64,000 nt of DNA, taken from Heterodontus francisci. Its lineage: Eukaryota. How positions within the stretch are numbered: the stretch's first letter is position 1; the number at the start of each line of letters is the position of its first letter. A program made the position numbers and the translations under genes. Of this stretch, positions 1 to 37,400 are shown one piece after another. The stretch lies in contig NC_090387.1 in the NCBI RefSeq assembly GCF_036365525.1, forward strand, positions 44,011,404-44,075,403. Direction: 5' to 3'. The notes beneath the pieces were generated by a model that saw nothing but the letters and a program-made list of their open reading frames with translations, made no database searches and was not told the DNA's origin.

Positions 1-850
1 TCAATGACACGAACATGGAGCATTTTATAAGCCCCTGGTTTTTCTGTATATTTTGCAAGGTGGTTGCATTTTCTGAGAGAAGAAAGCCCATCACTGAACT
101 TGCTCCTTGTCAAGGAAAGTTCTTATGTTTGTCAATGTAGCTCCCTGTATATGCATCTGGGTTCCACTGGAGACATTTTCCACAGTTGTGAACTTGCTGG
201 TCTTGGACCACTCAAATTGTGTTCATTTTTAGCCCTGTACAATTCAGAACAATGCTGAATTCAGTAAGAGATTACATTCTGTGTCCTAATTAAATTCATT
301 TTTCATACCCTATATTGTAGTTCCTAAACATGAAGTAAGGCTTGAGATTAAAAGTTTCAGGAATGGAAGTAACAGATGTCACTACTCTGCAACAAAAAAC
401 ACTGCCTGTCAATACTAGAGAGAATAACAATGTTCCTGTTGTTCATCCACCAGAAGTTTACTGAGCAGAGCCTACACAGAAAGCTTCCTTCATGCATTCC
501 TAGCACAGTCAGCCTGCATCAGTGTTGGAATGTGTACACCTGTCTATTAGACTACACTATCCTAATCATTGGCTGTCACCAGATTTAGTCTTGGAGAACG
601 ATCTTTCTTTTAAGCTCTGGGTACATTTACAAAAAATATAGGAGTCAGATCTAGCAATCAGATCTTACTTTTAACCAAAATGTTTTACACACCTTTGATA
701 TGCCTTGAAATACATACAGAAATGCAGTATTTCTCAGTTCGTGTCTCTAGTCCTGAGACACTAGGCCAGCACACTGCCATTTCAGGCTAAGTTTAAACAC
801 AAACCACCCAGGATGTAAGTCTACTCTCTCTGTTGTCTGTAAGAGACCTA

Positions 851-1510
851 GGGGAGAAATTCAAATAGCGCTGGTTTCTGTCTGAAATGGATGGGGAAAT
901 TTCACACGGCCCAAGGACCAAGAAAAATAGACACTCAGGCATCAACTGTATGAAACCGGTTAGCTATGGACAGCAGTTGGGTATTTCATGCAGCTTGCAG
1001 ATTGGAGGGTTTGGCATTTTGGTTGACTCTGCACCCAGCTGCCCAGCTGGCCCTGGAGGTGGGGGAGCTGATATTTCTGGGGAGACTGGGTGGGGTGGAG
1101 GGTCAAATCCGGGCTAGCAGTGAACTGCAGTGTTTCTGTGGAATCGAAACAACTTCTGCTCCTCTTGGCTCCATAGAAATTAAAGTCTAAAAAAGTTTTT
1201 TCACCTTTTTGTGGACAGCCTTCAGTCCACAAAGTGGCCCTTAATTCAGCCGCTGAAGACCTGGAACAACTGGGCGGGGCAGATTGGGTGCAGCTAATGA
1301 CCAATTTTGCATCAGGGTGCTAAAACTAGGATCCCTATGTTGCATACTCTAGATGTCTAACGCCTGGTTCAGGTGATTGCCCATGACACTCCAAAGTCAC
1401 CAGGGCACTTCCAGTGGACATTGGGCACAAGTGATTGCAGCCTGATAGCTGTCCCCCTAACACTCATTGTCACCCAGAAGATGGGCACAATGCTGCCCCA
1501 TTTCCACCCC
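851..1510. mobile_element. Non-autonomous Harbinger-like element
   Basis: GC-rich insert bounded by ggggagaaatt and tttccacccc, with tag flanking both ends. Confidence 0.5.
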
Positions 1511-16400: not shown

Positions 16401-19400
16401 CACAGAATCATGATTAACTTTGCCATCCTGTGAAGTTCATTAATCTGTACTTGCACATTCATAAATTTGTTTAAACTATCTTCTTTAAATAGTGAACGCA
16501 GATGATATTGTTAGCAAATTGGATTGGAAAAGTAACCATGTCAGACTATGAATTGGAGCATAAATAATATACACACAATTGATATAATCTAATAATCACT
16601 GAAACACCCAGAATTAATCATCACTTTTCTCCTAATTCAATCTTTTGCATCATTACCTTTAATGAGTCCTCCCAATTTCCATTATGTCACCAACATTCAG
16701 TACATAAACCAATATTCCAACAAAAAAAAATAGACAGAAAATGATAATCATCATAATTTTTAACAGTCTGATCTTTAAATCAGTCACAGTGAGGTACAAT
16801 TTCCAAATTTCTATAAAGTAAAAAAGTTATGAAACTAAAATTACACAGTTATAACAATTGAGAAACGATCTCATAATGAACTATTGACTTTGTAATTCTT
16901 GGGCTGTGAATTTTAAATCTGAAAAAATATTTTTCAATCAGCCTTCATTTTATGTCTCTATATTTTTGTATTTAACCAAAACTTGTAGTTCAGCTTTAAT
17001 TTTACTATCGTGCCATTTTAATGATGTGGTGTACAACAGTGGAACAGATATGGACATTTTACCTTAAGATTTCTATTCTACACATTTTACTTTTGAGTGC
17101 ATTTGCAATGATCTCTGCTCCTTCATCCTCCAGCATGTTTCCCTCTAAACTGTGAATAAAAATAAAATAATTATCATCTTTTCTTTAGCTCTGCCTCTGT
17201 GAACATAGAATGTATTTTTGAAACAATGAAGTGGTCATTGACTGAGTTATAATTGTTTGATTTACGTTCTGCTGGTATATTCCCACAAACTAAACAGTCA
17301 TTTCTGTCTTCCTGTCCTTTATCAACATTTAACCACAACTGGCACTTATATTGCAACTTTAATACAGAAAAACATTCAAAAGTTACTTAAAAGAAGCTTA
17401 AGGGAAAATTCGATGGTGAACCAAAGATGGAGATGTTTGGGGAATGACCAAAAGCTGGGTCATGGCAGTGGGTTTTTTAGGCGGAGGGCAGTGGGGTGGA
17501 GGTGGGGTGGGGGGTGGTGAAGCAGGTTGAAGAACGAATTTCAAAACATGGAGGCTAAAGGCACATCCATCAATTGTGGGATGAAGAGATGGAAAAATGC
17601 TCAAGAAGCTAGAGGCAGAGGAATGGAGTTTTCAGGCAGAGTTGTAGGCAGTTAGAGAAATCAGAAAAAGTAGGGCTATGGCCAGATTTAAATATAAGGA
17701 TGAATATTTTAAATTTGAGGCACTGGGGGATCAGGAGCCAATGTAGGTCAGTGAGGACTTGGTGTAGGCTAGAATATAGGCAGCAGAATCTGTTGAGCTG
17801 AGGTTTAATGAATGATGAAGGATGGAAGGCGAGCTAGTAGAAAATTGGAATAGTCAAATCTAGAGGTGACATAGGCATGGAAGAGGGTTTTAGCAGCAGA
17901 TGAGTTGAAATAAGGTTGGAAGTGGATGATTTTACAGTGGTGAAAATAGACAGGTAATGCCATTTCCCGAGGCACTTCACTGGTCTTCAGCTAGATATAC
18001 ATAGGGATACTGCTAGAACCCCCACAGAATTTCAGGGCTTAAATATCTTTCCTATGGAGAGTGTTTACTGAGCATTTATCTTTAAATTATACTGAAAGAT
18101 TTGAATTTATAAGTGGCTTTCATGACTTCATAACATCCCAAAGTGTTTTACAGCCAATGAAGTACTTTTCAAGTGCAGTCACGGTTATAATGTAGGAAAC
18201 ACATCAGCCAGTTTGCACAGTGATGTTGGTTGAGGGACACTGGGAAGAACTCCCCTGCTCTTCTTCGAATAGTACCATGGGATTTTCTACATCCACCTGA
18301 GGGGGGCAGATAGGGCCTTAGTTTAACATCTCATCCAAAAGACAGCACCTCTGACAATGCATCACTCCGTCAGTACTGCAGTGGAGAGTCAGCTTGAATT
18401 ATGTGCTCAAGCCTAACCCACAAACTTCTGACTCAGAGGCGAGATTGCTACCTTTTTGTAACAGCTGACTTCACATTGAGTGATCAGCACCACTGTACCC
18501 AAGAAAATATGAGGCAAGACTCAAACTTGCAGTAATTGGTCACAGTAAATAACTAGTCCTACAACAACTGCACAAGCATTTTAAACTAAAGTTGTTCATG
18601 TGGATTAAAAGAAAATGTGTTGGACCATTTTCTTTTAATGCTATGATTAATCACAAATTATTTTAATATATGCGATCAAATATTAATATTTTCATGTTCA
18701 GTGTTTTTGCTGTTTTAATAAATTTCAATAAAAATTTGAATCAAGTAAAAATTTGAAAATATTAGTCACAATATAAATATATCAATTGTAGAACTCAATT
18801 TGAAAGCCAAAAAGCAACCTTAATATTTACTATAGCCAAGTGTGAATATTATTTATAGTATCTTCTAAATGCAAAGTGTGAGACTCATCTGTCTGGTTAT
18901 CTGTATGTACAATATTAAATATACTTTCATTAACAAAAATTTAGTAGGTTTACCTTTAAAAAAACACAATGACTGAGTCACCAAAACTCCAGAACATTTC
19001 TAATACTTCTAGTTCAAGTAACAAAAAGCACATTTGAATACCTCAACGTCTTGACTCTTGAGAAAACAGACTCCAATCTTTGGAAACCTGAAGCTCCAGC
19101 TTTGCAGCCATCCAATTCCAAAGTTTCAATAGTTCTATGGTAAGAAAGAAGGTTTGCAATTGCAGTGCAATCAGTCACATTCAAAGAGACGTAAGAAAAA
19201 TTTACAACGTCACTGGTTTGGGAGGCAACTTGTTGGGTTAAATCTTCATTTGCTGCTTCATATAGACAATGAGAGGCTGTTAGCATTTGTCTTTTGTGTG
19301 CTGTATATTTTGGAATATTTTCTGGAGTTAACGCGTCTTGTTTTGGAACTTCAACTGCAGCAACATTTTTGATAGCAGCAAAGACTTCCCTTTCCTTAAC

Positions 19401-22400
19401 TTGATGTTCAGGCACCAACTGTTTCACAAGTTTTCTGTTGCTGTGGGAGACTAGGCCAGCAGTGAACCTCAATACAATCTCAAATACATTGTCCTTTGAA
19501 CTGAAGGCTTTATGCACATGATCCACACCAGGTTCATTTGCAGAAATGCAATAGAGTGCTGCAAAAAATTCCTGGTGAGTCAGATGGAAAAATTGCCAAA
19601 TGTGGGATTGCATCATTTTCAGGCTTTCTTTGGTGAGAATTTTCTTCCAGAAGGACTTTGTGTCCTTGGGGTTTTGGGCGACGTTCCTTTCAATGTCTTT
19701 TGCTGAGAATATTATTGTTTTATTGATGACCCCATCCCATGCAAGTTGTGCCAATTTAATTATTTCTTTTTTTTCTTCATCAGCTTCTATGCAGAAGGAC
19801 TCAGGGTCTTCTTCCTCGTCATTGTTACAGACCAGTAAACACTTGGTGAATCTGAGGAACAAATCTGTGATTGTCCTGGGAAAGGAAGAGAGCTGGGACC
19901 ACTTGCCTTTACAGTGAAAAGATTTATGGAGGTAGAAACACAGGATGTCACAAAATGCAGGAACATAGCAAAGTCCAAACAAGGAATCGATACCCTTCAC
20001 TGTTCGAAAGACGTAATCAGCAACTTTTTTATCCTTAAGGCACTTCAAAAAGTATGTAGCAATTTCTTTTTTGGAAAACCCTAAAATTTCAGCACATCGA
20101 TTAAAATATGTTTTGTTATCTATATCAATTGTGGTTGGACGCGATGTAATGAGGACAGATGCCTCACGAACAAGGTCTCCCTTTATGATACTTACAATCA
20201 AATGGTTAACAGGTTGAGCAATGGACGGGTCAACAGTTGAATGATTGTTAAATTCAAGAGGCAGTTTGAATTCATCCAATCCATCAAATAAAAATAGGAT
20301 CCCACTAGAAAATTCAAGCATCTTATTGCACACTGCTCTCAGATGAGGGTAACTACATACGATAAGGTCAGTCAGACTAATTTCTTCCTTGATTGTGTTT
20401 AACTCCCGAAAACTGAAATACAGCAGCATATAAAACCCTGCATAAATTGTTCCACAGGTCCAGCTATGAGTGAGCTTCTGCATCATAATGCTTTTACCTA
20501 TACCTGCCACTCCTTGCACCAGAGTGACTCGTGGTGGCTTTTCTTCAGGTGCAGATGGTGAGAGAAGCTGTTTCAAATCTATACGCTCACACGCTGTATA
20601 GTCTCTGTGTTGCAGGAGCTCATGTTCAGTCTTGTTCCTTTCTCTAACATTGAGAATGACTAGACTAGTAAAATGTTCTTGCAGCAATCGTTTGGAGTTA
20701 TCAAATTCAAAGTATGGTTTTATTCTCTCCATCTGTGCTTTTAATGTGCATTTATGTGTAGCTACTTCTTCAGAAATTTCTGTAATTACAAGAAAAAGTA
20801 ATGACTCACAATGAAGCCTCCATTATTCACCATAATGTATGGGGCCTCCCTGGTGAATATTAGAATTTCATACATACCCAAGTGTCACCAACTTTTGGGG
20901 TATAACACATATGATGCAGTAATACGCAAAATGAAAACAGGTACAACATAAATCACAGAAAACAAATGTAATTTTTCCTGGTTTATGAGGTTGAGTTATG
21001 TTGAACCAAGGAGGTTGGTATTCGTGCCTGATGAAATGGGACAATGTCTCCTTCAAGACTTTGCCGTACAAGAACGAAGGCTTATCTCAAAGACAAATAA
21101 TTGGAACTTGGGCAATGAAGGTTTCGTTGTATATAAAGAAATGCAAGCCATCTGATAAACTGTAGTTCATCTTAAGAATTAAAATATTTCTCGTAGAAAG
21201 ATGTGAAGGTGTTCAATCTGTAATCGATTCCATTCCACTATGTGATAAATACAGTCTATTATTAAAATCAGTTAGCAGGAGTATTTGGACACCTGACTGT
21301 CACATAATGTATTGGTGCGATCATCTGTAAAGTGCCACAAACATTCCTCAACTCTGGACTCGTTCTGAATGTAGCAAATGTGAATTGTAATGGCTGGCTA
21401 AAAAAAATTATACCTAAAACAATGTGATTATTTTCATCTTGCACCACAGGTCACATATAATTCATGATATCAAATCAGCTCTCTCCTAGGTTTCATTGTT
21501 TCCAAGAAAAGCAAAAATGCCACTTCCTCCAAATTATTAGGAAGACTCTGAAGAAGGAATTCTGACCTAGGCAAGGTTCCCAAATAAAAATATAATCTTT
21601 GCCTGATATCTTGGATATAATTTTGGATTCATTTTTTAAATATACGTTCTGCAATATCTAGTGTATAGCTTGTTCTTTAAAGCAGTTTTTTACTCAATAA
21701 AAATGAGATAACAATGCTACACAAATTGAACATCATGTGACTTATACTGATGTAACTGGGCCGTTGCACTGAGTACAGGAACATAAGAAACCATGGAATG
21801 AGAAGGAGCCCATTGTCCAATGAGGCCATTCCCTCCAATGTTCCATGCACAACTATACTATCACAGCTTCCATCTAACCTAATCCAGAAATTCCTAAGGA
21901 AGGTGGCTTAAAACAGCTAAAACTTCCTAAAAAGCAAAAACAGTGAAGTCTACAGAGTGCTTCAGTGGACTCGATAAAACAAGGTGTCACATATGTCAAG
22001 GATGATCAGTGGGATGGAAGTTTGTTATTGGTGAGTGAATGACCTGGATCCGATGGTGATCTGGATGGGAAATGGAGGGGATTGTGAGGAAGGTAGAAGT
22101 TTAGGAGAAGTGATGGTCAGTGAATTGCTTGCAAGCATACTCTGGTTGGAGACTGATGTTGGCAGTCTCCTGTTGCTGCTGCCCCATCCAAAAACAGGGA
22201 TGAAAATCGCCCCCTCTGTGTGTAAAGATTTCAAACAAAGCATGATCAATACAGACCCAACAACAGAGACTCACCTCAGCCAAATAAGGAAACAGAAACA
22301 TTAGGATAAACCCTATCTATATCCATATTTTATCTGGAATGTGGTTTAAATTGTGCTTCTGTCCATCAGTATTAAATAAGTTACAAACCAATAGGTCCAA

Positions 22401-25400
22401 ACTATTAACAATACTGGAACCTTAAACATGGAGATGCCTACTTATTATTAACAGTTGAGACATTACCTTTAACAAATCACACTTACCTTCAGGGAAATTG
22501 GTTATTCTGATGTTTGCATTAGTATCCTCAAATGTAGCCATTGGTAGGTCTTCGTGGAGAAGATCAATAATTGGCCTGTCATCTTTGTCAATGTAGGATT
22601 CCAGCAGTGATTTTATGTACTTCTTTAAGCCAAGATAAAGGTCTTCAGTGTCTTGCAGCACATTGAAAAAATCAGCACATGACTGCTGACCTCTGTGGCT
22701 CAGCATATCGAGAAGAGTTCGCCCTTTATCAATATCTGGTTTATCTTTTATCACATTGAGGTCATCTTCAGAGATTATTTTCTTATCCATTAAAATGTTT
22801 AAGAGTGGCAGTATGTTAGGACTGATGTAATTAACTACAATGCGACGACCTTCTTCAATAGCATGTATTGCCCAGTCTGCACGTTTCATTTGTGATGGAA
22901 AATATGCAGTACTGTCACGAGCACCTGTTGAGAATGGTACAAAACCTTTAAATCAAACAAATTAAGCCAACTAAAACATGCAAACTTTTGTGGCTAATAA
23001 GATGGTTATTACAGCAAAAATAACTGGCTTATAATTTTTCAACTGCTGTATAATTTTGCAACTGCTGCATTATTTTTGTCTGGCAACTTTATATCAATGT
23101 TTGAAGTACTAATTATTTTCCCTGTTTTGCAGGTTAAATTACACACATACCAGAACAGCATTTTCCCAGTAATCCTACAAGGACAGCAATACAGAGCACA
23201 ATTGTTTATTTTACCCACTTGTGCTTGCCTTTGTTCTAGTGAATGGGCAATGGAGCCACCTTTCCTATCCGAAGCTAGTGCTGCTAAAAGGAGCCACCTT
23301 AGCACAGAGTGAAGTAGGAATGTCTGTTCTTTTTTGAGTGAAGTCCTCTGATGCCACCACTGCTGAGTAACATAAGGAGTATGCCAAATGTTGGGCATAG
23401 CTACATCTGTTGCTTTAGGGCTTTATACACACAAGCCCGGAATTTCTGCAGGGTTTTGTAGGAGGAAGTGGATGAAACCCCTGGAAAATGGTGTAAATTA
23501 TTAAAAATAGCCACTTCTGCCATTTCTCCAGAGCAGAAAATTGGGAGTACCTTGTGGAATTTTAGGGCCATAACTATTTGTGAGAGAAGAAAATATCTTA
23601 TACTCTTTTATTCTACCAAGTTTCTTTCCTCTTCCTTTCTCCTTGCTCAGTACGGTTTTGTGGACACCTGTTGCTCTCTGACACCTGACCCATTCTTCAT
23701 GTGTGAGCAAAGAGCATTATAGACTGATCCTGTCCTGGCATTCACGCATGCTCACTTTCAAGAAGAGTTGTTGCATAGCACTTAGGCGCTGAGGTTAACT
23801 TTGATACCCCCACCACAACTCTACCACAGATAAGCAGAGGGCAGGACTCAAACCTGGGACCCTCTTAGTAATGAAGAAAACTTTTAAAGGGTATAATTTC
23901 TTGCCTGAAAAGTTAAAGAGCAAGTTCTCAAAATACCAAAAATACTTGGGCAATATTGTGTAGTTCTGGGGTAGAGGAACAGAATTTCAGATGTAAGCCA
24001 GAATTACACCTATTCTAAAATACATACAAAATGCCAGTAGAATTGGCTGCAGAAAGAAGATTCTCCCTTCCTCAAAATGCTGCATGTTTGCAACTAACAC
24101 AATGATCAGGGAAAAAGCTGCTCTCAGAAATGTCATCGTTTACACTAGAATTTCACTTAACTTAGCTTAAATCAGTAGAAAACAGAACTGAGTTACCTGC
24201 ATGACCATCTCTGTCTGAAACATTAACTTTCACTAAAGTAATTAGAAAACTCTATTCTCAGCTGAGCAACTTGAAAAGGATTCTACAATCTGATTTTCGC
24301 AGTTTCAGGCAGGAAATGTTTTTCTTCCCACCCTTCTGTCATGGAGCCTTTATCAAGGGGCTCACTATGTGCATTTCCACATGTGTCCTTATAATGAGGC
24401 AGAACAGGAGTAAGAGGAGATAACAGAGGCATTCAGGATGAAGCTGCACCATTGGAGAAGATGACCAACTAAGGAGTTATACTTTCACCAGCATTTACAA
24501 ACCACCTTACTTCCAGGTAGTGCTGCATTCTGTCAAATTCTTCTTGGATATTGAGCCCAAATTCATTTTAATAAGCAGTTTAACAAAATAATCTTTCTGT
24601 AACTTTACACACAAAGAAAATATGCCCCTAAAATCACTACCATTTTTGTATAAGAGCAGAGACTTTTGAAACAAATTTGCTCGCAGGAAGCCTATTGAGT
24701 CAGCCACACACCTACTCATTAAATTTAATAGCTTTCCTCAAATTTTTCTAACCTGCAACGCATGTACTTTTACGACAGTTCTGCACAAATCTTTAAGTCC
24801 ATCGCCTCTTTTCTACAATTAAACTTCTAACTGAACATAGGACATTGCAATGAGATTGTTACCTTGGGTAAAAGGAGCAGCAGATGGCCGACCAACACAT
24901 CAAACTTAGCAATCTAGTTAATATATCCTGATGGTATATTCTGCTCATTTTACTCAGGGTATGTTAAGAGCAGCTAAAGCATTCAGAGATATTCTAAATA
25001 TCATTATAATTTATTATTGTATGAACATGCAAGGCATTTATATGACATTCCTCTGCCCACTATTTTAACCAAGGCATTAAGCCAAGTATTTTAAATGGGT
25101 TAATGCCTTCACCCTGACTTCACCCATACCTCAGTTCATTTACTGCTGAATCCTTCATCCAAGCCTTTGTTACCTCTAAAGTTGGCTATTCCAAGGCTCT
25201 CCTGGTCTTCCTCCTATGTTCCAACATCCATAAACCTCACCTCATCCAAACCTCTGTTGATTGTATTCTAATTTTCACCAAGTCCCTTTCAACCATCAGT
25301 CCTGCGCTCGCGGACCTACATTGGCTCATGGTCCTGCAATGTCTCAATTTTAAAATTCTCATCCTTGTTTTCAAATCCTTTCATGGCCTTGCCCCTCACT

Positions 25401-28400
25401 ATCACTGTAACCTCCTACAACACTTTGAGATCTCTGCGGTGCTCCCATTCTGGCCTCTTGCACATCCCCAGTTTTAAGCATTCCTAGGTCCTAAGCTCTG
25501 AAATTCTCTCCCTTAACCTCTCCACCTCTCTACCTCTGTCTCCTACTTTATGCTGCTTAAAACCTACCTTTTTGACCAAGCTTTTGGTCCTCTGTCCCAA
25601 TATCCCCTTGTGGGGCTCAGTATCAAATTTTATTTGATAATGCCTCTGTGAAGCATCTTGGGACATTTTACTATGTGAAATGTGTTATATAAATATACGT
25701 TGTTCCTGTTGTTATTAAAATACTAGTGGAAATCAACTAAATGTGGTAAGGGCTTGTATGCTAATACAGCACACAATAATTTGTAGGTTATAATATTATA
25801 CACAACTATGCAAGGTCAAAGCATTTCTATTTTGTTATTTAATCATGCTCATTTTGACACAGATAAAAACAATTCTAATTTTCTTTGCATTTATTATGCA
25901 GTGGAATAACTCACCTTTGATTTCTAAAACAACTACTTTTGAAATTGTGTGCTTTAGAGAGTCATGTTGGACTTCAAAAGAATACACCAGCCTTCTTTCT
26001 GTAGCTTTTGCATTTCTGAAGGTGAGCTGAGATATTAAACTGTATGCTCCACTTCCTTTGTGATTTTTCAAAGTCATGGCAATGTCATATTCTCCTTCTG
26101 TGAAGTATATCGTTTTGTCTTGTTCCTGTTCACTCTGAAAATAATCTCCTATCCTTCTGTATTCATGTTGTTTTACAGAAGATAAGGTGCTGTCCCATTT
26201 ACTAATGAGAACTCTCTGGAATTTATCCCCCTCCTCCCTGTACCAAGAAATAGTGATAGCTTTTGGTTTGAACCAGAGAACTGCACACGCCAGAGAGAGG
26301 GGATCATCCATAAGGAAATGATTTGGTTTAATAACATCTGTCACTTTGGGAGCAACTGAAAAACAAAGAGGAACAGAATCACCCAGTTGTTCTTTTCTAA
26401 CAAAAACTGCAATTCTTGTACTGTGCTTCATTGATCACTTTTTCCACCACTTCTATTTTAATGTTCCATTCTCTTTGAATAGAAGCTAAGTGATAGCCTT
26501 CAAGTGTTCTGATTGATTAACAACTGTTGATCTGTCTTCTCACATTTTGCTACATGGGTTGAGCACTAAGGGCCAGACTTTTAAATCCCGCTGGGGGCAG
26601 GAGCGGGTGTGAGCGCGATTTAAAAATTGCGTTCTTGGAAGTCGGCAGTGGGTCCCGCCGCCTCCGGAATGTGAAGCTGCCTTTAAAGGGACACAAGGAG
26701 GGAGGGAATGACAACTCCACACGTCTCCAATTAATCACCTCTTGAGTTCATTGAGGAGCTCATTAACAGGCTTGTCAGTGGCAGTTTAAATTTTCAAAGG
26801 AAGGGAACTAGGAAAAGCCATGTCTGGAATACAGCAGGGTGTACAAGTTGTGAACGCTGCGGGAAGGCCATGAGGGCTATGGGAAGGGCTGATTAACATG
26901 ACGCCATTGCAGGAACTGAAAGACTTGCATTTGCCGGTGGTGAGTTGTAGGAATCTGGAGAAGGATGTGAGGGCGTTGGTATCACATGTGCAACTGGGGT
27001 TGGCATGGGAAGGCCTGGTGAATGCACAAAGCCCGCTGAGGGAGTTCAGATGGGAACAGGCTACCCTGACATTGGACAGAGCAGCCAGGATGAGCTTCAG
27101 CAGATGCAACCTCCTGAACAGCAGGAGGCCAGAGGAGCACAGTGGGGACTGCAAGGTGAAGCAGGGGCTTCCTGACATTGGGTCTACTGCCCAAGAATCA
27201 AATGTCTGCAAATGACAGAGCTCCAATACCGCAGGCGGCTATACCTATCCAGGCAGACGGTCTCAGCCCTTTGTGCTCTGCTTCACAATGACCTGAGGCC
27301 TCATGGCCCCCATGGCAATTGCTTACCCAGCAGTCAAAGTCACCATCTCCCTGAATTTCTGTGCAACTGGGACGTTCAGTGATCAGATAGGTGGCATCTC
27401 GCAGTTGGCAGCTCATCATGCCATCAGGAAGGTCACGGATGCCACTTTGACACAGATGGGTCTGTGCAGCGACAGATGGCATTGGGTTTCGCCTCCATTG
27501 CTGGATTCCCCCAGGTGCAGGGCATCAACTGCACCCATGCTGCCATCAAGGCACCCAGTGACGAGCCAGTGAGATCCATCAGCAGGAAGGGATTCCACTC
27601 CCTCAACGGCCAACTGGTCTGCGACCACAACAAGAGCTTCCTCCATGTGTCTGCTTGCATTCCTGGCAGCTGCTGTGGTTCCTTCATCCTCCGCCAGTCC
27701 AGGCTGCCTCAGGTCTTCACTCCATCCCCCAAAATGTGTGGATGGATCCAAGGGGACCAGGCATATCCCTTGAAGACATGGCTACTGACCCCTCCACTGG
27801 TTCCTCAAACGGAGAACCAATGCTGCCTGCTCAGCAGGCCAACCATTGAAGAGGCCATTGGATTTCTGAAGAAGCGATTCCAGTGCCTGTACTGGTCATG
27901 TGGAGCCCTCCAATACTGTCCTGCAAGGATCCCTGTCATTATCATGGTCTGCTGTGCTCTCCATAGCATGACCCTCCAAAGAGGTGTGGATCTTGAGGAC
28001 AGTGAGGTCCAGAAGGAGCCAGCTCATCAGGGGAGGAGCAGGAGGTAAGAGAGGAGGAGGAAGAGGGGAATAACACTGAATAGAGAGATGCCCCTGCTGC
28101 GCGAAGAGGTGGCCTCCTCTAGGAAAAGGACCTCCCTCATGGCCTCCAGCATTAGATCCAGGCTGGCATCGATGATATGAGGGTCTGCCCTAACCTTCGT
28201 GCCAGGCCTCCAGCTCCCCTCTGGACAACCAGCAGCCTCAGAATTGGCTGTCTTGGGGAGTCTCCATGAGCCCCACAACTGATCTGATCCACTTCTATTC
28301 CTGACCCCACTGGCTCTAAGTGTTCAGGAAACCCATCCCCATATCAATTAAGGGCTCACCCATTTTAAAAAATGAATCTGAATCATTTTCCCACTGGAGA

Positions 28401-31400
28401 TGGGCTTCTGACCCAAAACCAGACCCGGTTCCTGTTTCCCGCCTCTGTAACAAAAATTCAGCTCTAAGTGTCAGCTTAAAAAGCCACCTGGTATGTAAAT
28501 GTGGTTAAAATGGCATGCACATTTGAATATTGTGACTGATAAAAAATAATTACAATATAGAGTAGCAAAGGAAATAATGCTACCCTTAAAACTGGATCAT
28601 CATCACATGGTCAATATCCTGACTTTTGTACCTAACATCTTTGAGAGAGAATCACCACCAGACGAATTGCTGTGGTTCAAGGAGACAAGCCACCACCAGC
28701 TGTTCAGGGCAACTAGAGAGGGGCAATAAATGCAGTCTGCCCAAAGTCACCCACATCCGAAAACAAGCTTAAAAAAGACTGGTTATTTACTTGTTCTTCT
28801 ATTGCTGTAGAAAATAAATGTTCCAAAGCAAACAGCTGCAGTGGTCACAGAAGTTAGAAGCAAAGTGAGCAATGTTCCTGATCTTATTCTTGGATTGGAT
28901 CCTACAAAAAAAAAGGAAGACCAAAGATCTGTTATTGATTATTCATTGCTGTTTCTCTGTGCTGGCTATAGCAAGACTGTGCTTGCGGCAGAAAACAAAG
29001 TTTTAAATTTTGTTGCAGCACAGCATAAAGCAGCGTCACATTTGAATAACTGAAAGCGCCCTTTATTAATAAATGAGGCAGTAACTTCTAGTTCATTTAT
29101 AATGTCTGGTGAAATGTTATCTGTTGGCAAGGCAAGTGGCCTTACTATATTCCATTTTGTATTGTAATTCTTGACATTTTTAAACATATTTGTATTTCAG
29201 AGGGCTCCCATTGCTTTGCAAGTGGAATTCTTTCAACAAAAATAGAAATGTGAAACTTGTGACAGTTTAGTGTCTGCATTACCATTTAGATTGTGAGGTC
29301 AATTTAAAAAATAATTACTTATTGTTCCAATATTCCACCCAGTCCCACTCTGCGCCAAAGACATGTTGCACCTGACGCTCCAGCCCCTCGTTTAGAAAAT
29401 AATACTTTTCTTTTTCTACCCTAAGGATCAAGTGCTGGCTTGCATCAAGGTTGTTCTTTTGCTGATATTAAATGTGGGATATGGTGATAAAAATAAAAGC
29501 CAAAAGTTGATGAGTAGCATTATTACAAGGCAGTGTAATGCAAAATAACAGGTTTGGGAGCATTTAAAAAAAATTACATTTATACTTACACATGCAAAGG
29601 AAAGGCATCCTATGGTCTGTGTGCAAGATCCGTGGCACAGATTTGTAGTAAAAAGGACAAAAGGCTACAAAGAGGAATGCTAACATACTTCTTTGATAAA
29701 GCCCCTCAAATATGGACTTGGATTAACCAGTTGGGACTTGGGAAAATTAGAAGAAATGTATGGCATGACACAAGCTGCCCTATGTAGATTCTTCCATCAA
29801 GTTGAAAGCAGACGACTGTCTAATAACGAATAGAAGAAACTGAGTTTTGAGATGACTACTACTTGAAGGTGTCACGTGGGAGCTATGTTGTCATATTTTC
29901 AGGACCCAATACCTAACATGATTGGCTTTCAGAGAGGCAAACAGTTACTTCTCAAACCAGACAACCAGAAAAAATAATAAGAATAATAATAACCACACTT
30001 TAGGAAAGATGTGAAAGCATTGGAAAGAGAGCAGAAAATAGCCACAAGAATTGTTCCAGGGATGAGGAACTTCAGTTATGTAGATTGGAGAAGTTGGGAA
30101 ATTTTCCTTAGACAAGAGAAGGCTGAGGAGATTTGATAGAGGTATTCAATGTCATGAGGGGTCTGGACAGAGTAGATGGGGAGAAACTGTTCCCACTCAT
30201 GAAAGGATCGAGAACGAGAGGGCACAGATTTAAAGTAATGGGTAAGAGAAGCAAGAGCAACATGAGGAGAAACATTTTCCCGCAGCGAGTGGTTAAGGTC
30301 TGCAATGCACTGCCTGAGAGTGTGGTGGAGGCAGCTTCAATTGAGGCATTCAAAAGGGAATTAGACTGTTATCTGAAAAGGAAGAATGTGCAGAGTTATG
30401 GGGAGAAGTTGGGGGAATGGCACCAGGTGAACTGCTCAGTTCAGAGAGCTGGTGCAGACACAATGGGCCGAATGGCTTCCTTCTGTGCTGTAATAATTCT
30501 GTGATGCTGTGTGTATGATGTGTGCCCACACTGTGTTAAGGAAAATGATGGCAATATACACATATTTTATGGCCAGTTCTGATGCCAGTTCAGGGAATGA
30601 GAAGGTAATTGGATCTCTTTGGGGTCAAGGTGACTCCAAGATAATACAAGTGGTTATAGAAAGTCAGACCTAATTTAACTCTCTGTGGCAGGTGTGTAAT
30701 CTAATATCTGCCCAAACTGATCCTAAATGCATGAGGGAAATGTTGATGACTGCCCTGCCAGGCTGGCTCATGAATGGATCCTGGATGGGAGAAACTTATC
30801 ACAGGGGGCTGGGAATTTTCCCATTGGTTTGCAGAATTATCTGGAGTCGAGTGGGTTTTAACTGTAGCGCTACACCTGTGCACTCTTGGGGTCCCTAAGC
30901 CAACCTACACCTAAGCTCGTGACAGTGAGTTGGACTCCAATGGGGAGAGTGTGTGCACTCCATACTGAAATTCTACATGTAGTTTGGTTCAGAGACTCAA
31001 ACATGTTGATGGGTTTTCATATGTCTCAGACAGCTGACTGATCAAAAAATAAATTATTCAGTTGAATCTTTACTAATGATAGGAAAACTGTTTGTTCCTA
31101 ACAATAAAAAACTGTTCCCTTGTATATTTTGACCTAGTAACAGCCAAATAAACTTGTAAATTCCTCTGAATTCAGATATAACACTAATATCCAGAATGGA
31201 ATATGGTAACAATACTATTGCTTTGTTGTCTTGTACATTTCTAGTAAATTCATATGAAAGTTTGTTAGTATTTCCATCGTACTACCTCTGTGAACATTTT
31301 CTGAAAAACATTCACAATTCTCCACATTTCATAGAACAGCTGAGCAAAGAACAACATGAATCATGAAGAGAAACTGGGCCAAAATTAAAATATGGCGAAG

Positions 31401-34400
31401 CTCCTTGTAAGAAATAGACGTTTACATGTTAAGAACAGATAATGTCTGTTACTTGTGTGTGTGGCTCAATTCCTCAAATTCAAATCAAGGTTCCCGAAGT
31501 GAAAATAAGACAGAATATATGCAATATTAGAATCAAAAAAATGAAATGTTCCTCATCATTTTCTTGATACCATTCTCCTTTATTATTACTCACCCTTGAT
31601 GGTTAAAGTAACAACTTTTTGTAAAGGTGTCTTCAAAGCTTCATGACTAACTTCACATTTGTAAGAAGCTCCATCATCTGCTTGATTGCCTTTGATGATT
31701 AGGAATGAAAGCAGATTAAACGTCCCATCTTGATTTTGTTGAGGTGATCCTGTAATCGCTCTTGAAGTGATATCAACTTGGTTTTCACTGTCTCTTGAGC
31801 CACTTTTTAACCAAGAAACAGAATGGTTTTTTGGGTAAAAGTTTTTCATCTCACAGGTGATTGTTTTATCTTCCCCAGGTTCAATGACAATGTTTACAGT
31901 GTTTACTGAAACTGTAGGAGGTGCTACAAAGACACAAGGAATAAAGATAAATATTATATTCCTTATATTAGCTTTCATTATTGATGTCATCTTAAAATGC
32001 AACGTGTTCATATTAGGCATGGATAGGACCAGATGTCGGCAATTTAGCCCCTCGAGCCTGCTCTGCTACACAGTGAAATAATGGTTGATTTGCAGCTTAA
32101 TTCCATCTTTGCCCCATATCCCTTAATACACTTGGTCAACAAAAATATAGAAATCTCAGATTTAAAATTTACAATTTGTCCAGCATCAACTGCTATTTGC
32201 GGAAGTGAGTTCCAAACTTCAACCACCTTTTTTGTGTAGAAGTGTTTCCTAATTTCATTCCTGAAAGGCTCTAATTTTTAGACTGTGCCCCGTAGCCCTG
32301 GACTCGCCAATCAGTTTCTCTCCTTCTACCCTATCAACATATCCTTCTATTCCTTTCTCCCTCATGTGTTTATTTGGCTTGCTCTTAAATCCATCTACGC
32401 TAGTATCCTCAACTACTTCTTGTGGTAGAAAATACACATTCTTACCACTCACTGGGTAAAGAAATGTCTCCTGAATCCTTACTGGATTTATCAATGACTT
32501 CCTTATATTTGCAGCCCCTAGTTTCCGAAAATGGAAACAACTTCTCTACATCTGCCCTATCAAACCCTATCATAATCTTAAAGATCTCCACAGATCACCC
32601 TTCAGTCTTCTCTTTTCTAGAAAAAAAAACAGCCCCAGTCTGTTTAATCTTTCCTGATAGGTAGAACCTCTCGGTTCTGGTATAATTCTAGTAAATCTTT
32701 TTTGCGTCTTTCCCAGTGCCTCTATATGCTTTTTTTTTTATTAATATGGAGGCCAGAACAATTCTCAGAACTCGAAGTGTGGTCTAACCAAGGTTCTATG
32801 CAAGTTTAGCATAACTTCTTTTCAGTTCTATCCCTCTAGAAATAAACGCCAGTTCTTTGTTTTCTTTTTTAATTACCAGATTAACCTGCATTGCTACTTT
32901 TAATGATTGGTGTATCTGTACCCCCAAATCCCTCCGCTACTCTACCCCATTTAGACACTTAGGGCTGCATTTTACTTTGGCCGTAAGGGTGCACTTGGCG
33001 GAATCGCCGTGTTATTCAGCGTGGCGGCTCATTTAAATGGCCGGGGTGGACTCCCCACCCCGATGGCATGGAGGGGGTGGGCTGTCCCTCCCCGGCAATG
33101 GTGCCAGAAGCCTATGTATAGGCGTTGATGCCATTTTTAAAGGGCTTCGAGCCCTACATTGCAATGTACATATTTACGGGAATACTGATGTATTCCCCCC
33201 CAATAAGCATAGAAGTAATTACCTGCCCCCCACCCCCAAAACACTTACCTTGTGCTGCCAACCTTTACTCCCCAAAGTTCATCAAGTTTAAACTTTACCC
33301 CTACCCACCACCCACTAGACCAATGAAATTAATCTGACCCCGTTCTCCCGCTCACGCACTGAAAAACTTACCTGCTTCCCCCTCCCCACCAGTGTCATGC
33401 CTCAGATCCCCAGATGGGTATCCAAAGGCGTGGGAGTGTCAGCCACCGGCAGCTGTCTCGCTCCAGAACGGACGGCAGGAGTGGGTAGGTTATCAATTCA
33501 TTTATTAAAATAAATTTAAATATTTAAATTTTGCTCCAATTGCCCAGCTAACGAAGTTAAGGACTGTATAAGATTAAAAGAAAAGGCCTATAAAGTTGCC
33601 AGAAATAGTAGTCAACCTGAGGATTGGGAGGATTTTAGAATACAGCAAAGGAGGACCAAGAAACTGATAAAGGGAGAACAGAATATGAATGTAAACTAGA
33701 AATAAACATAAAAATGGACTGTAAAAGCTTCTATAGGTATGTAAAAAGAAAATGTTTGGCTAAGACAAATGTTGGTCCATTGAAAGGTGAGTCAGGAGAA
33801 TTTATAATAGGGAATAGAGAAATAATAGAGAAGCTACATGATTAATTTGTGTCTGTCTTCACTGAGGAACATACAAGAAATCTCCCAGAATTAGAGATCC
33901 AAGGGACTAAGGAGAATGAGGAATTGAAGGAAGAAGGCTGTATTGGAAAAATTAATGGCGCTGAAGGTTGATAAGTGCCCAAGACCTGATATTCTACATC
34001 CCAGAGTGTTGAAAGAGGTAGATATGTAGATAGTGGATGCATTGGTGATCATCTTCACTATTTAAGAAGGGAGGTAGAGAGGAAACAGGGAAACCTGTTA
34101 GCTTTACATCCGTAGTAGACAAAATGCTAGAATCTATTCTAAAGGATGTGATAAATCCACACTTGGATAATAATGATCTGATTGGGCACAGTCAACATGG
34201 GTTTATGAATGGCAAATCATGTTTGATGAACCTGTTGGAGTTTTTTGAGGATGTTACTAACAGAACTGATAAAGGGGACTTGGTGGACATAATATACTTG
34301 GATTTTTAGAAGGCTTTTGATAAAGTCCCCTACAGGAGGTTGGTGCGCAAAATAAAAGCACATGGGATAGGAGGTAATATACTGGCATGGATTAAGGATT

Positions 34401-37400
34401 GGTTAACAGGAAGAAAACAGAGAGTAGGAATAAATGGGTCATTCTCATGTTGGCAGGCTGTGACTGGTGGGGTACTGCAGGGATCACTGCTTAGGCTCTA
34501 GCTGTTCACAATATATATCAATGAATTGGATGTGGGAACCAAATGTAATATTTCAAAGTTTGTGGGTGACACAAAACTAAGTGGGAATGTGTGTTGTGAG
34601 GACGATGCAATGTGGTTTCAAGGGGATTTGGACAGACTTAGTGAGTGGGCAAGAACATAGCAGATGGAATATAATGTGGAAAAATGTGAGGTTATCCACT
34701 TTGGTAGGAGGAATAGATGTGTGGAGTATTTTTTAACTGGTAAGAGATTAGAAAGTGTAGATGGACAAAAGGGACCTGGGTGTCCTAGTCAATAAGTCAC
34801 TGAAAGCTAACATGCAAATGCAGCAAGCAATTAGGAAGGCTAATGGTATGTTAGCCTTTAGCGCAAGAGGATGACAGTACAGGAGTAGTGAAGTCTTGCT
34901 TCAATTGTATAGAACCTTGGTTAGACCGCATCTGGAATACTGTGTGCAGTTTTGGTCCCCTTACCTCAGGAAGGATATTATTGCCATAGAGGGAGTGCAA
35001 TGAAGGTTCACCGGGGTGGCGCGACTGTCCTATGAAGAGAGATTGGGGAAACTGGGCCTGTATTCTCTAGAGTTTCAAAGAAAGAGAGGTGATCTCATTG
35101 AAACCTACAAAATACATAAAGGGATAGACAGGGTAGATGCAGCTAAGATGTTTCCCCTGGTTGGGATACAATTTCAAAATAAAGGGGAAGCCACTTAGGA
35201 CAGAGATGAGGAGAAATTTCTTTACTCAGAGGGTTGTGAATCTTTGGAATTTTTTATTCCAGAGGGCTGTGGAAGCTCAGTCATTGAGTATGTTTAAAGC
35301 AGAGACTGACAGATTTCTAAATACCAATGACATAAAGGGATATGGGGATAGTGTGGGAAAAATGCATTGAAGTGGATGATCAGCCATGATCATATTGAAT
35401 GGCAGAGCAAGCTCGATGGGCTGAATGGCCTACTCCTGCTCCTATGTTCCTATGAAACTCATGATTTCCTTGGGTTTTAATAAAATAATCAGGTTTCATA
35501 CTAATGTTGGTTGAATTTTCTGTCTATTGTTTTGGCAAATTTAGATGTCAGACCTGCAAAATGGATCATTTTTCTATTTTAAAAATCAGTAGGGCAGTTA
35601 TAGTGTGGTCAGATGCGAAGCAATGCTCTTTAAATCACATCTCAAGACTATGCCTGAACTGTAGCCTCAGATCGGAAAACCTTTCTGTGCCATGTTGAAT
35701 GTTTACATTTGCTTTACTCGCCATCCTTATTTGAGTGAGAGTGCCCATTTTATTGCCAGATTGTGCTGTAGGCCCACTAGTATGTAGGCTGAGAGGCCAA
35801 ACTCATTTCATATAAAACAATTACAACTAGCACATAGCAGACAATTATTCATTACTCTGGACATAGATATGGGCACTAAAGATAGAGTCCACCTATGAAA
35901 ACCTCAGAGAAGTGATCCTTCTCGAGAAGTTCAAAAACTTGCTCATTAAAACCGACCTGGAGGAACAAGAGGTTCCAAGAGCCAGGCAGGCAGCAATCCT
36001 GGCTGCTGAATATATGCTTGTCCACAAGCCCTTGCTCCAAAGGAAACCCTGCCCTAGTCACCTCCAAAAACCTGAAAAGGATAGAAGGTGGGAGGATGAT
36101 AGGAGGATGAACAGCCATGGGCAAGAAGGGGAAGCTGGAAACACAGGGGGCCCTCCTCAGGCCAAAGAGGAAGGTGCTGAGAGCACGAGTGATGTCCAAA
36201 AACCTGTGTGTTTCCACTGTAATAAGGCAGGTCACCTATGAGCTGGCTGCTGGAAGTTATGGGGAAAACCTGTAAGATTAATCAGGGTACACCAGACCAG
36301 TGCAAGAAAAGAGGCCCTGATGAAAAGCACAGCAGACCAGGCTGTGGCTTTAACTGCAGCAGTAAGACCCAGTAAATATAACTCTACGAGGGAAGGAGAA
36401 CTTAACAAAATCCCTGAGAATTACCAGGGTTTAGTGTCCAGAGGAAAAGATGCAATGAGAATTTTTTTTTTTTATGATGCAGCATAAATGAGATGTGTGG
36501 AGTTCAGTTGATTGAAGATCTCAAAACAGGTTTATTAAACAGCTAACTATTACATGCAGCACAGAGCTAACCATTTACAGGACTTGCCTCTTGGTGTTAC
36601 AGTAGCAGAATGAGACTGGCATGTTGTCACATGACTGCATCCTGGTACTCAGCTCATTAGCATACTAAGATCTTAAAGGGATATCACTCTTAAAGGCAAT
36701 CACACAATAAAAATGACCCTATACCCCTTGAATGAGGCAAGTAAGCCCAAAGTCATACTTAGGGATACAGGAGCCACCCAATCCCTTCTGCTGGTAAAAG
36801 GCATGACCTTTCCCCAGAGGGTGGTTTATTATTTTACTTAGATCAGTTTTAGGTACAATCAAGCTCACCTTTTACTTTGTTAAAATCAAGAAAACCTGTC
36901 CGATTGGTTCTTTTATGAACAGTTCTGGAAGAATTACACTTCAGGAATTATTCCTAAACTCACCTGTCACTGACAGAGTAACTCTCCCCGTTGCTTTATC
37001 GGAAAATATTGTAACTGTGCAGGAGTATGACCCGATGTCATAGATTGTAACATTTTTTAGGAGTAAAGAAGCATTTGCTTTGCTTATTTCATTTAAAGAG
37101 AGACTTGATCCTGGTCTGTAGCTTTCATATTCTCCAAAGTCGAACAAACAAACTGTTTTTTCATCATTTCCCACTCTGTGGTTCCATTCAATCACAATGT
37201 ATCGCAAATCAAGCGCAACTGTGGGGGAAAATGCACAGCTGAGCAGTACATCTTTACCGATTGTGGCATTGACAGCTGGGCTGACCACCAGCTCCAGGGA
37301 AGCTGCATTAAAAAAAAGATACACATATAAAAAGGCTCTAAACATGGTTAATAAATCATTAATTGAATTGTTTTTTATTTAGTAAAACTCCACCGGGAAA

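Follow-up and report, generated by a model that had tools for sequence, protein, structure and literature searches.

A C1-derived immunoglobulin-like domain, predicted to be cytosolic, between the transmembrane helix and the CARD of a B7-H6-like NLR gene in sharks and rays

C1-set immunoglobulin (Ig) domains are regarded as a hallmark of the extracellular and lumenal molecules of adaptive immunity, and we know of no member of the set that resides in the cytosol. The I-set Ig domains of titin, obscurin, MyBP-C and palladin fold in the cytosol without a disulfide. To our knowledge, all described vertebrate NLRs are soluble cytosolic proteins without a signal peptide or transmembrane (TM) helix, and the characterised ones all use cytosolic adaptors and ATP. 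Butyrophilins of the BTN3A1 type combine a B7-like V-C ectodomain, a TM segment, a juxtamembrane region and an intracellular B30.2 sensor, and the cytoplasmic tail of human B7-H6 is described as Gag-like rather than Ig-like. In sea cucumber, the NLR-related proteins AjNLRC4 and AjNLR-new are localised at the membrane and contain Ig, TM and NACHT regions, and the intracellular Ig domain of AjNLR-new is reported to recruit partners (PMC8699970, PMC13133943).

The window analyzed here is a stretch of 64,000 nucleotides from the horn shark Heterodontus francisci. Its minus strand carries a gene of 13 exons (Table 1) that matches exactly the database protein P0116, a Heterodontus francisci 'NLRC3-like' protein of 1318 aa with the order signal peptide-V-C1-TM-C1'-CARD-NACHT-LRR, in which C1' denotes the second C1-type domain. 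Exons of the window were searched singly, by reference, and whole-protein work was carried out on database proteins (P0116 and its orthologues). At E 1e-27, the ectodomain matches CD276 (B7-H3) and B7-H6. The CARD matches ICEBERG (E 1.9e-8) and the CARD of NOD1 (E 8e-4). The downstream region matches NOD2 (E 8e-65), NLRP3 (E 6e-48) and ribonuclease-inhibitor-type LRRs, and its P-loop, GxxGxGKS, is invariant in the orthologues. The gene therefore has the components that define an NLR, namely a NACHT NTPase with a P-loop, helical domains and C-terminal LRRs, but it departs from the soluble type in carrying a leader, a B7-type ectodomain and a TM exon in the same transcript and database model.

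Table 1. Exons of the gene in the window, with residues numbered as in P0116
Feature	Position	Strand	Residues	Remarks
Leader exon	39041..39092	minus		ATG and 17-aa hydrophobic signal peptide, phase-1 donor; sequence and exon mapping
B7-type V exon	36964..37302	minus	18-130	Pfam V-set E 6e-10; conserved sequons NAT, NAS, NVT
Ectodomain C1 exon	31591..31926 (borders ±2 nt)	minus	131-241	Pfam C1-set E 3.4e-14; canonical F strand YKCEVSH
TM exon	28791..28901	minus	242-278	Ser/Thr-rich hydrophobic helix, then basic anchor YSNRRT
C1' exon	25915..26355	minus	279-425	441 nt, phase 1-1, 147 codons
CARD exon	22487..22924	minus	426-570	Phase 1-1; Pfam CARD E 1.8e-9; spliced straight to C1'
NACHT-helical domain exon	19043..20782	minus	571-1149	Pfam NACHT E 2.7e-32, NLRC4_HD2; NLRP3 and NOD2 matches
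Six LRR exons and stop codon	7354..17151	minus	1150-1318	Exact P0116 mapping; ribonuclease-inhibitor-type LRR matches

The C1' exon is real and is spliced into the mRNA. Its borders had been predicted exactly: on the minus strand a pyrimidine tract ending in CAG precedes the exon, GTGAGT follows it, and the frame is open throughout. In four RNA runs, which come from two organisms and three studies, assembled contigs join C1' to the TM exon upstream (donor 28791) and to the CARD exon downstream (22924). In each of these runs both joints, 26355 to 28791 and 22921/4 to 25912/5, lie on a single contig of 2.7-3.6 kb, which places C1' directly after the TM exon, as had been proposed. The TM exon ends at 28791, with its GT donor at 28790 (not 28785); it is of phase 1-1, and reading through into the intron leads to a stop after two further codons. 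C1' is included in the RNA contigs and in all database isoforms, none of which skips it, unlike the CARD exon, which is absent from some isoforms of Narcine and Pristiophorus (P0001, P0117). A division of the locus into two genes, an Ig gene and an NLR starting from an ATG at 22889, is ruled out by the spliced contigs and by P0116.

The exon encodes a disulfide-less, C1-derived Ig-like domain with an insertion of ~37 aa. All the C1 hallmark motifs named in the original prediction are present in its translation, namely LAC (domain residues 21-23), FKP (28-30), ISW (35-37), YSLISQL (104-110) and YSFEVQH (124-130). The other features claimed for it are also borne out: the F-strand Cys is replaced by Phe (YSFEVQH versus YKCEVSH in the ectodomain C1), the domain is longer than the ectodomain C1 (147 versus 111 codons), and both C1 exons begin with AP and end with IKG. 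Pfam C1-set (PF07654) scores C1' above its threshold (26.0 versus 21 bits; E 1.1e-5), although residues 13-42 alone are aligned, and the neighbours of C1' in the ESM Atlas are all C1-set clusters (0.91-0.94). Pfam I-set gave no match to C1' at E <= 0.1, and a weak one to the ectodomain C1.

Structure prediction likewise gives an Ig fold. The AlphaFold (AF2) model of C1' is an Ig sandwich (pLDDT 68.7) with strands B, C and C', an extra hairpin, and then E, F and G; residues 59-77 are disordered, and confidence is low in about one fifth of the model. In the model, the ~37 additional residues make up an acidic, disordered loop followed by one more β-hairpin (80-86, 89-98). Foldseek matches the model to the C1 domain of B7-H6 and to antibody CL, and by VIA-align its core fits both at about 2 Å (Z 10.0-10.3, 2.0-2.2 Å, 21-26% identity). 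A canonical C1 sandwich has seven strands (ABED/CFG) and lacks C' and C''; the added hairpin gives the model a V-like strand count, so that TCR Vα domains reach an equal Z of ~11, at 3 Å and against a model of moderate confidence. The model and the sequence together thus identify C1' as a predicted Ig β-sandwich derived from the C1 set.

Twelve shark and ray orthologues share the architecture, with a C1' of 142-147 aa. Cys301 of the B strand, Trp315 of the C strand and Phe404 of the F strand are invariant in 12/12; in domain numbering, W37, Y124, V128 and H130 are invariant, and the F-strand motif reads Y-x-F-x-V-x-H. C1' accordingly lacks the disulfide of the C1 set: the B-strand Cys never varies, and all 12 elasmobranchs have Phe on the F strand, none of them retaining the Cys. 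The insertion is likewise retained. Comparison with organism B, taken as a close relative of the window's organism from a share of exact 31-base words of 0.65, gave three nonsynonymous (D16E, G69E, V123M) and two synonymous changes in the C1' exon, a crude ratio of ~0.4 from too few sites. A TRAF2-type motif, (P/S/A/T)x(Q/E)E, was considered in the acidic loop, where the horn shark and three other sharks have SEQE, but among the 12 orthologues it is not kept in the remaining sharks or in most rays, and it was dropped.

The closest relatives of C1' occur in a family of proteins with the architecture V-C1-TM-[C1]n, found in 43 proteins that are mostly annotated 'uncharacterized', the alligator ones being named B7-H6 (NCR3LG1). 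Examples are alligator 'NCR3LG1' (P0135), Callorhinchus LOC103174895 (P0010), Latimeria P0014, Xenopus tropicalis LOC100498328 (P0012/P0107) and a protein of H. francisci itself (P0024). A TM segment followed by a degenerate C1 domain is present in chimaera, coelacanth, lungfish, bichirs, amphibians and alligator. In hhalign comparisons, C1' aligned with the first post-TM domain of this family (D3) at E 1.3e-16 over 142 columns, that is, over its full length including the insertion. The same profile aligned with the next domain (D4) at E 1.2e-11, with the family's ectodomain C1 at E 9e-7, and with the ectodomain C1 of its own gene at E 1.4e-6 (93 columns); the ectodomain C1 domains of the NLR gene and of the family aligned with each other at E 2.8e-28. 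Of 40 aligned domains, 25 have V, L, I or F at the F-strand position, 12 have Cys and 3 have some other residue. F-strand motif matches in the family are mostly without Cys in the first post-TM region (49 non-Cys versus 11 Cys) and mostly with Cys before the TM (48 versus 18). In the later post-TM C1 domains 113 matches have Cys and 54 do not, a retention contrary to the simplest expectation for a long stay in a reducing compartment.

These comparisons bear on the origin of C1', for which a duplicated C1 exon, placed beyond the TM, had been suggested. The two exons do share their AP start, their IKG end and phase 1-1, and BLASTP aligns them at E 1e-6 over the E-F-G strands. However, hhalign places the gene's own ectodomain C1 last and the first post-TM domain of the family at the top, and the same order of TM and degenerate C1 extends from chimaera to alligator, so that the duplication is much older than the NLR fusion; a recent local tandem copy is very improbable. 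Sequence comparison indicates instead that C1' is inherited together with the V-C1-TM cassette. The occurrence of a C1'-like juxtamembrane domain in B7-H6-like proteins of many non-mammalian vertebrates suggests that this cassette predates the split of cartilaginous and bony vertebrates, and the V-C1-TM-D3 unit was probably fused to a CARD-NACHT-LRR gene ahead of the divergence of sharks and rays.

C1' is most likely cytosolic, which is the straightforward reading of a chain that begins with a signal peptide, has a single TM helix and continues into CARD-NACHT-LRR. A point against it is the signal peptide itself, whose n-region is not basic and whose core contains a Glu. Two further arguments for this topology in the original prediction stand only in part. 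The horn shark C1' has no N-glycosylation sequon, compared with three in V and one in C1, but this is weak as a topology argument, since 8 of the 12 orthologues carry one or two, and sequon density equals the shuffled expectation in C1' and in the post-TM domains of the family alike. The loss of Cys, which had been taken as adaptation to the cytosol and as independent support, is indeed fixed, but it is only suggestive, given that about two thirds of the later post-TM C1 matches in the family have Cys. A location of C1' outside the cytosol would follow if the TM segment did not stop transfer, or if an isoform skipping the TM exon were functional, with V, C1 and C1' then lumenal or extracellular. 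Skipping of the TM exon leaves the frame intact, the hydrophobicity of the horn shark segment is moderate (Kyte-Doolittle 19-residue peak 1.85), no C1-set domain is otherwise known from the cytosol, and the Cys pairs kept by the later family domains point the same way. Yet each of the 11 orthologues scanned shows a TM-grade peak (1.72-2.63), no second TM helix was found downstream of the first, and the TM exon is joined to C1' on the single contigs of 4/4 runs and in every database orthologue model. Moreover, skipping the TM exon would send CARD-NACHT-LRR to the lumen of the secretory pathway, where it would be cut off from ATP and cytosolic adaptors, and the disulfide partner Cys is gone in 12/12 species. 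A lumenal or extracellular C1' is thus considered quite unlikely.

Taken together, the results favor, with a probability of roughly 70%, a reading of C1' as a cytosolic, disulfide-less, C1-derived juxtamembrane spacer or coupler of a single-pass membrane NLR, inherited with a B7-H6-like cassette. As a folded module independent of a disulfide, it would keep CARD-NACHT a set distance below the membrane and could relay clustering across it, between the ectodomain of B7 type and the NLR part. Transmission might run outside-in, with ligand-driven clustering of the ectodomain nucleating the NLR, or inside-out, with cytosolic danger sensing altering the display of the B7-like ectodomain to NK or T cells, by analogy with butyrophilins. 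C1' might otherwise be a tolerated relic of the B7-H6-like 5' cassette, now a mere in-frame linker in which the change from Cys to Phe reflects decay. Among the folded domains of the protein, C1' shows the lowest conservation: mean pairwise identity is 64% among the 12 orthologues, and identity between sharks and rays is 55%, values close to those of the linker and the TM exon. The short stretch recognised by Pfam (30 residues) and the low-confidence fifth of the AF2 model fit such a relic. A homodimer prediction gave no support for self-association (ipSAE 0.01 and 0.08 against a mark of 0.32) and is counted neither for nor against binding. Against decay, 34 positions are invariant across the 12 species, which diverged roughly 250-300 million years ago; they take in core positions of strands B, C, E and F as well as F84, G87, D90 and H98 of the insertion, and the length of C1' ranges over only five residues. 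Its exon is present in every database isoform, whereas the CARD exon is not. The F-strand Phe is invariant rather than variable, which argues for selection on a core-filling residue, and this Phe should fill the core of C1' without a disulfide. A relic is accordingly judged improbable, and the spacer or coupler reading is preferred.

The shark gene runs counter to both rules outlined at the outset, since a C1-type domain follows the TM and the NLR appears membrane-anchored, in one spliced mRNA that is conserved in sharks and rays. A single helix and a C1-type domain devoid of the disulfide connect the B7-family ectodomain with a complete CARD-NACHT-LRR. If the predicted topology is true, C1' provides a natural test of how the Ig fold adapts to a reducing compartment, and the protein may form a direct wire from NK-type surface recognition to signaling of the inflammasome or NOD type. 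The presence of a C1'-like domain in many non-mammalian B7-H6-like proteins points to a forgotten cytoplasmic Ig tail. On this basis C1' is tentatively put forward, at somewhat less than even odds, as the founding example of an unrecognised class of cytosolic C1-derived Ig tails of B7-H6-like membrane proteins in chimaeras through crocodilians, welded to CARD-NACHT-LRR in elasmobranchs; a single polypeptide would then link surface recognition of the B7/NKp30 type to an NLR engine, with C1' as the juxtamembrane coupler. The post-TM C1 domains of non-mammalian B7-H6 may already have been noted in earlier literature on B7H6 evolution. The literature searched, on vertebrate NLRs with TM or Ig parts, on C1 or Ig domains in the cytoplasm and on the tail of B7H6, yielded only the sea cucumber precedents and no description of the C1'-NLR architecture. 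Database entries for genes of this type are all automatic annotations ('NLRC3-like', 'uncharacterized').

Among known systems, the D3 domains of the V-C1-TM-[C1]n family are the most similar to C1'. Both directly follow a TM helix and a short basic anchor behind a B7-type V-C1 ectodomain, and both share a start of the form P-[KR]-[VIL]-[ST], the same type of B-C motif, a Trp that follows C' and is specific to the family, and extra residues inserted between C' and E. Both also have a hydrophobic residue in place of the F-strand Cys, as in LTFEVQH of Callorhinchus and YSFEVQH of C1'. However, sequence identity between C1' and members of the family is only about 25-30%, the acidic loop motif, [YF]FQxEQEQD-like, is confined to the NLR orthologues, and C1' is followed by CARD-NACHT-LRR, whereas D3 is followed by further C1 domains. 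Human B7-H6 (NCR3LG1) and B7-H3 (CD276) resemble the gene in their V-C1 ectodomain, but neither has an NLR module; in superposition on the C1 domain of B7-H6, the modelled core of C1' reaches Z 10.2-10.3 at 2.1-2.2 Å (21-22% identity). Relative to the canonical C1 set (CL/CH, TCR C, MHC α3/β2, β2m, tapasin/TAPBPR), C1' still has Trp on the C strand and an F strand of the form YxΦxVxH, but it lacks the B-F disulfide, has ~37 residues more (hairpin) and is predicted to be cytosolic. Its N-terminal half is like TCRδ C and IgM and its C-terminal half like CL and teleost IgM, and it superposes on antibody CL at 2.0-2.1 Å (23-26% identity). The titin/obscurin-type I-set domains are likewise disulfide-less Ig sandwiches but belong to a different set, the neighbours of C1' all being C1-set. 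AjNLRC4 and AjNLR-new are echinoderm proteins without CARD and LRR, and for AjNLR-new two TM segments and a NACHT outside the cell are reported; these descriptions set them apart, and the Ig-TM-NACHT combination of sea cucumber presumably arose independently of the shark gene. Compared with butyrophilins of the BTN3A1 type, in which the intracellular part consists of a coiled coil and a B30.2 sensor, the shark protein has an Ig fold and CARD-NACHT-LRR, and no homology of the intracellular parts is claimed. The design logic is nevertheless analogous, with a B7-family ectodomain, one TM helix, a juxtamembrane element and an intracellular sensor, and if the predicted topology holds, the gene would represent a shark counterpart of the butyrophilin design.

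The exon encoding C1', the C1-type immunoglobulin (Ig) domain that follows the transmembrane (TM) segment without an F-strand Cys, is flanked in minus-strand sequence by a 5' pyrimidine tract ending in CAG and a 3' GTGAGT. Its 146 full codons include LAC (21-23), FKP (28-30), ISW (35-37), YSLISQL (104-110) and YSFEVQH (124-130), and the upstream ectodomain C1 exon carries YKCEVSH and is 36 residues shorter. Pfam C1-set scores 26 bits on C1' (cut-off 21), aligning residues 13-42 only, and its last 45 residues align with the ectodomain C1 of this gene (E 1e-6). Among PDB sequences, the N-terminal half matches TCRδ C and IgM and the C-terminal half CL and teleost IgM, while all ESM Atlas neighbours lie in C1-set clusters. 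Sequence, motif positions and C1-set evidence show that the original prediction described this exon (coordinates, motifs and F-strand Phe) correctly throughout.

The database protein P0116 (Heterodontus francisci, 1318 aa, 'NLR family CARD domain-containing protein 3-like') matches exactly 13 exons on the minus strand between 39092 and 7357; exons were searched singly, and whole-protein analyses used database proteins (P0116 and orthologues). The TM exon has a clean acceptor and encodes a hydrophobic Ser/Thr-rich stretch followed by the basic anchor YSNRRT; its GT donor lies at 28790 (minus strand). Logan contigs placed on 22851-28850 come from four runs, two from each of two organisms, in three studies; the runs are presumed to be RNA, which agrees with contigs that are intron-less and with non-repeat intron sequence that is almost uncovered. 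In all four runs, one contig of 2.7-3.6 kb contains the joints 26355 to 28791 and 22921/4 to 25912/5, both with GT..AG ends on the minus strand, and no alternative contig over the C1' exon was found in any of them. Because both GT..AG joints lie on a single contig in each run, the splice from TM through C1' to CARD is real in two species, and the predicted succession of TM and C1' exons holds. Retention of the intron after the TM exon (28785-28790, minus strand) would add two codons (Ser, Lys) before a stop, leaving a tailless V-C1-TM protein; contigs over this donor contain the spliced form only.

Features of the gene and its introns, with P0116 residues and mean pairwise identity among 12 orthologues
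Feature	Window position	Strand	P0116 residues	Identity	Remarks
Leader			1-17		
V			18-130	76%	
C1 (ectodomain)			131-241	75%	
TM			242-278		
C1'	25915-26355	-	279-425	64%	441 nt, open frame, phase 1 at both ends
Acidic loop of C1'	~26125-26181	-			C1' residues 59-77
CARD	22487-22924	-	426-570	70%	phase 1-1
NACHT-helical			571-1149	84% (NACHT)	
LRR			1150-1318		six exons
Very high-copy repeat	25050-25850				C1'-CARD intron
Harbinger/PIF-type transposase remnant	27464-28045	+			TM-C1' intron; 194-aa ORF; Pfam DDE_Tnp_4, E 8.8e-20
LINE tail/reverse-transcriptase-like ORF fragments	30133-30504, 34124-34501, 35016-35370	+			intronic

Among database isoforms of the orthologues, none skips the C1' exon, which is retained in every contig and database isoform, the opposite of the general skipping that the original prediction had named as a contrary outcome. 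The CARD exon is absent from Narcine X4 (P0001) and Pristiophorus X2 (P0117), and the resulting Ig-TM-C1'-NACHT-LRR product is a possible regulatory isoform. An in-frame ATG at 22889 inside the CARD exon could, given an internal promoter, serve as the start of a soluble CARD-NLR. In P0115 (Mustelus asterias isoform X2), the first ~34 C1' residues are duplicated ahead of the domain proper, apparently through use of an alternative donor, retention of a segment or faulty annotation. In the transcript-like runs, summed contig depth over the repeat in the C1'-CARD intron reaches ~22,000, and partial matches and internal joints are numerous there; the repeat is presumably SINE-like, and it lies outside the gene's mRNA. 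The LINE-like fragments gave no Pfam match at E <= 0.01.

A search with the NACHT region of a ray orthologue recovered one protein with the P0116 layout per species in 12 elasmobranchs, comprising eight sharks (Heterodontus, Carcharodon, Scyliorhinus, Mustelus, Pristiophorus, Heptranchias, Rhincodon and Chiloscyllium) and four rays (Narcine, Pristis, Hemitrygon and Mobula), followed directly in the ranking by teleost NLRs at 30% identity. F404 (F strand), C301 (B strand) and W315 (C strand) are invariant in all 12, as are some insertion residues, and C1' spans 142-147 aa; both the Cys>Phe replacement and the insertion are thus conserved, as the original prediction had proposed to check. Judged by pairwise identity, C1' is the loosest folded domain, yet it is plainly constrained across the shark-ray divergence of roughly 250-300 My. 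Between the window and the second organism, the C1' exon shows five substitutions; three of them are nonsynonymous (D16E, G69E, V123M), the other two synonymous, and this number is too small for a selection test. A TM-exon Cys near the cytosolic helix end (aa 265 of P0116; window ~28830, minus strand) is also invariant in 12/12 orthologues and might be S-acylated.

An exhaustive HMMER search with the C1' exon returned 88 proteins, headed by the ray orthologue; the majority of the others are 600-2100 aa long and annotated 'uncharacterized'. The B7-H6-like family occurs in Callorhinchus, elasmobranchs (P0024 in the horn shark), Latimeria, Protopterus, bichirs, many amphibians and alligators, in which its members are named NCR3LG1 (B7-H6). 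Its proteins comprise a signal peptide, V, C1, a single TM helix and then another 3-15 C1-type domains; no further TM helix was found in them. The first post-TM domain (D3) begins with P-[KR]-[VIL]-[ST] a few residues past the helix, contains an insertion of variable size in the C'-E interval, and at the F-strand Cys position usually carries V, I, L or F (LTFEVQH in Callorhinchus). F-strand motif matches with and without Cys number 48 and 18 before the TM, 11 and 49 in D3, and 113 and 54 in later post-TM domains.

The original prediction suggested that C1' came from duplication of the gene's own C1 exon across the TM, given that both exons start with AP and end in IKG. In profile-profile comparison, C1' is closest to family D3 (E 1.3e-16; 142 columns, full length), followed by the second post-TM domain, D4 (E 1.2e-11; 113 columns), the family ectodomain C1 (E 9e-7; 88 columns) and, weakest of the four, its own ectodomain C1 (E 1.4e-6; 93 columns), a difference between first and last on which local duplication is rejected. 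The likeness of the exon ends is one of ancient shared C1 ancestry. The NLR ectodomain C1 matches the family ectodomain C1 at E 2.8e-28. By this ranking, the V-C1-TM-D3 block follows the same order as in B7-H6-like genes and was gained in one piece.

AlphaFold2, run on C1' with the orthologue alignment, gave a model (pLDDT 68.7, pTM 0.64) with strands B (20-28), C (33-41), C' (47-54), E (103-112), F (121-130) and G (136-144), a disordered segment at 59-77 and two extra strands (80-86 and 89-98). According to this layout, the 37-aa insertion consists of an acidic loop and a conserved β-hairpin. The loop carries a [YF]FQxEQEQD-like motif, conserved in sharks and rays, that may serve as a short linear binding motif; its interpretation as a TRAF2-type motif (SEQE) was rejected, as SEQE is not kept across orthologues. 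Foldseek matched the predicted Ig sandwich to Ig domains only, including B7-H6, TAPBPR, MHC II β and CL. In VIA-align, the B7-H6 C1 domain and antibody CL score Z 10.0-10.3 at 2.0-2.2 Å with 21-26% identity, and TCR Vα domains Z about 11 at about 3 Å, owing to the extra hairpin, which brings C1' to a V-like strand count. The model is best described as a disulfide-free C1 core carrying a V-like addition.

The leader exon encodes a hydrophobic signal peptide, the ectodomain is B7-H3/B7-H6-like with conserved Cys pairs and sequons, and a TM-grade hydrophobic peak is present in 11/11 orthologues scanned. The nearest match of the CARD is ICEBERG, followed by the NOD1 CARD, and those of NACHT and LRR are NOD2 and NLRP3. 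We infer a type I protein with C1', CARD, NACHT and LRR on the cytosolic side. The fixed Cys>Phe, together with the corresponding loss seen in most D3 domains of the family, is consistent with disulfide-free folding; however, many later post-TM family domains retain both Cys, which calls for caution on the cytosolic reading. The lack of sequons in C1', earlier taken as support for this topology, carries no weight, since sequons are exactly as dense there (0.61 per 100 aa) as shuffling predicts and occur in C1' of 8/12 species. C1' probably serves next to the membrane as a rigid spacer and coupler that would set the position of CARD-NACHT beneath the membrane and pass clustering between ectodomain and NLR, with signals that could run outside-in, or inside-out as in butyrophilins.

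Vertebrate Ig-TM-NLR proteins and cytosolic C1-set domains have no description in the searchable full-text literature, a survey of whale shark NLRs is silent on Ig-TM-NLR, and no papers on the V-C1-TM-[C1]n layout were found in the searchable literature. All orthologue and family proteins bear automatic names only; the architecture is already in databases and undescribed in the literature searched. The sole precedents found are sea cucumber AjNLRC4 and AjNLR-new, which combine Ig, TM and NACHT (PMC8699970, PMC13133943). Each of the parts (Ig fold, B7 family and NLR) is already familiar, and we rate their combination as other than a categorically new system.
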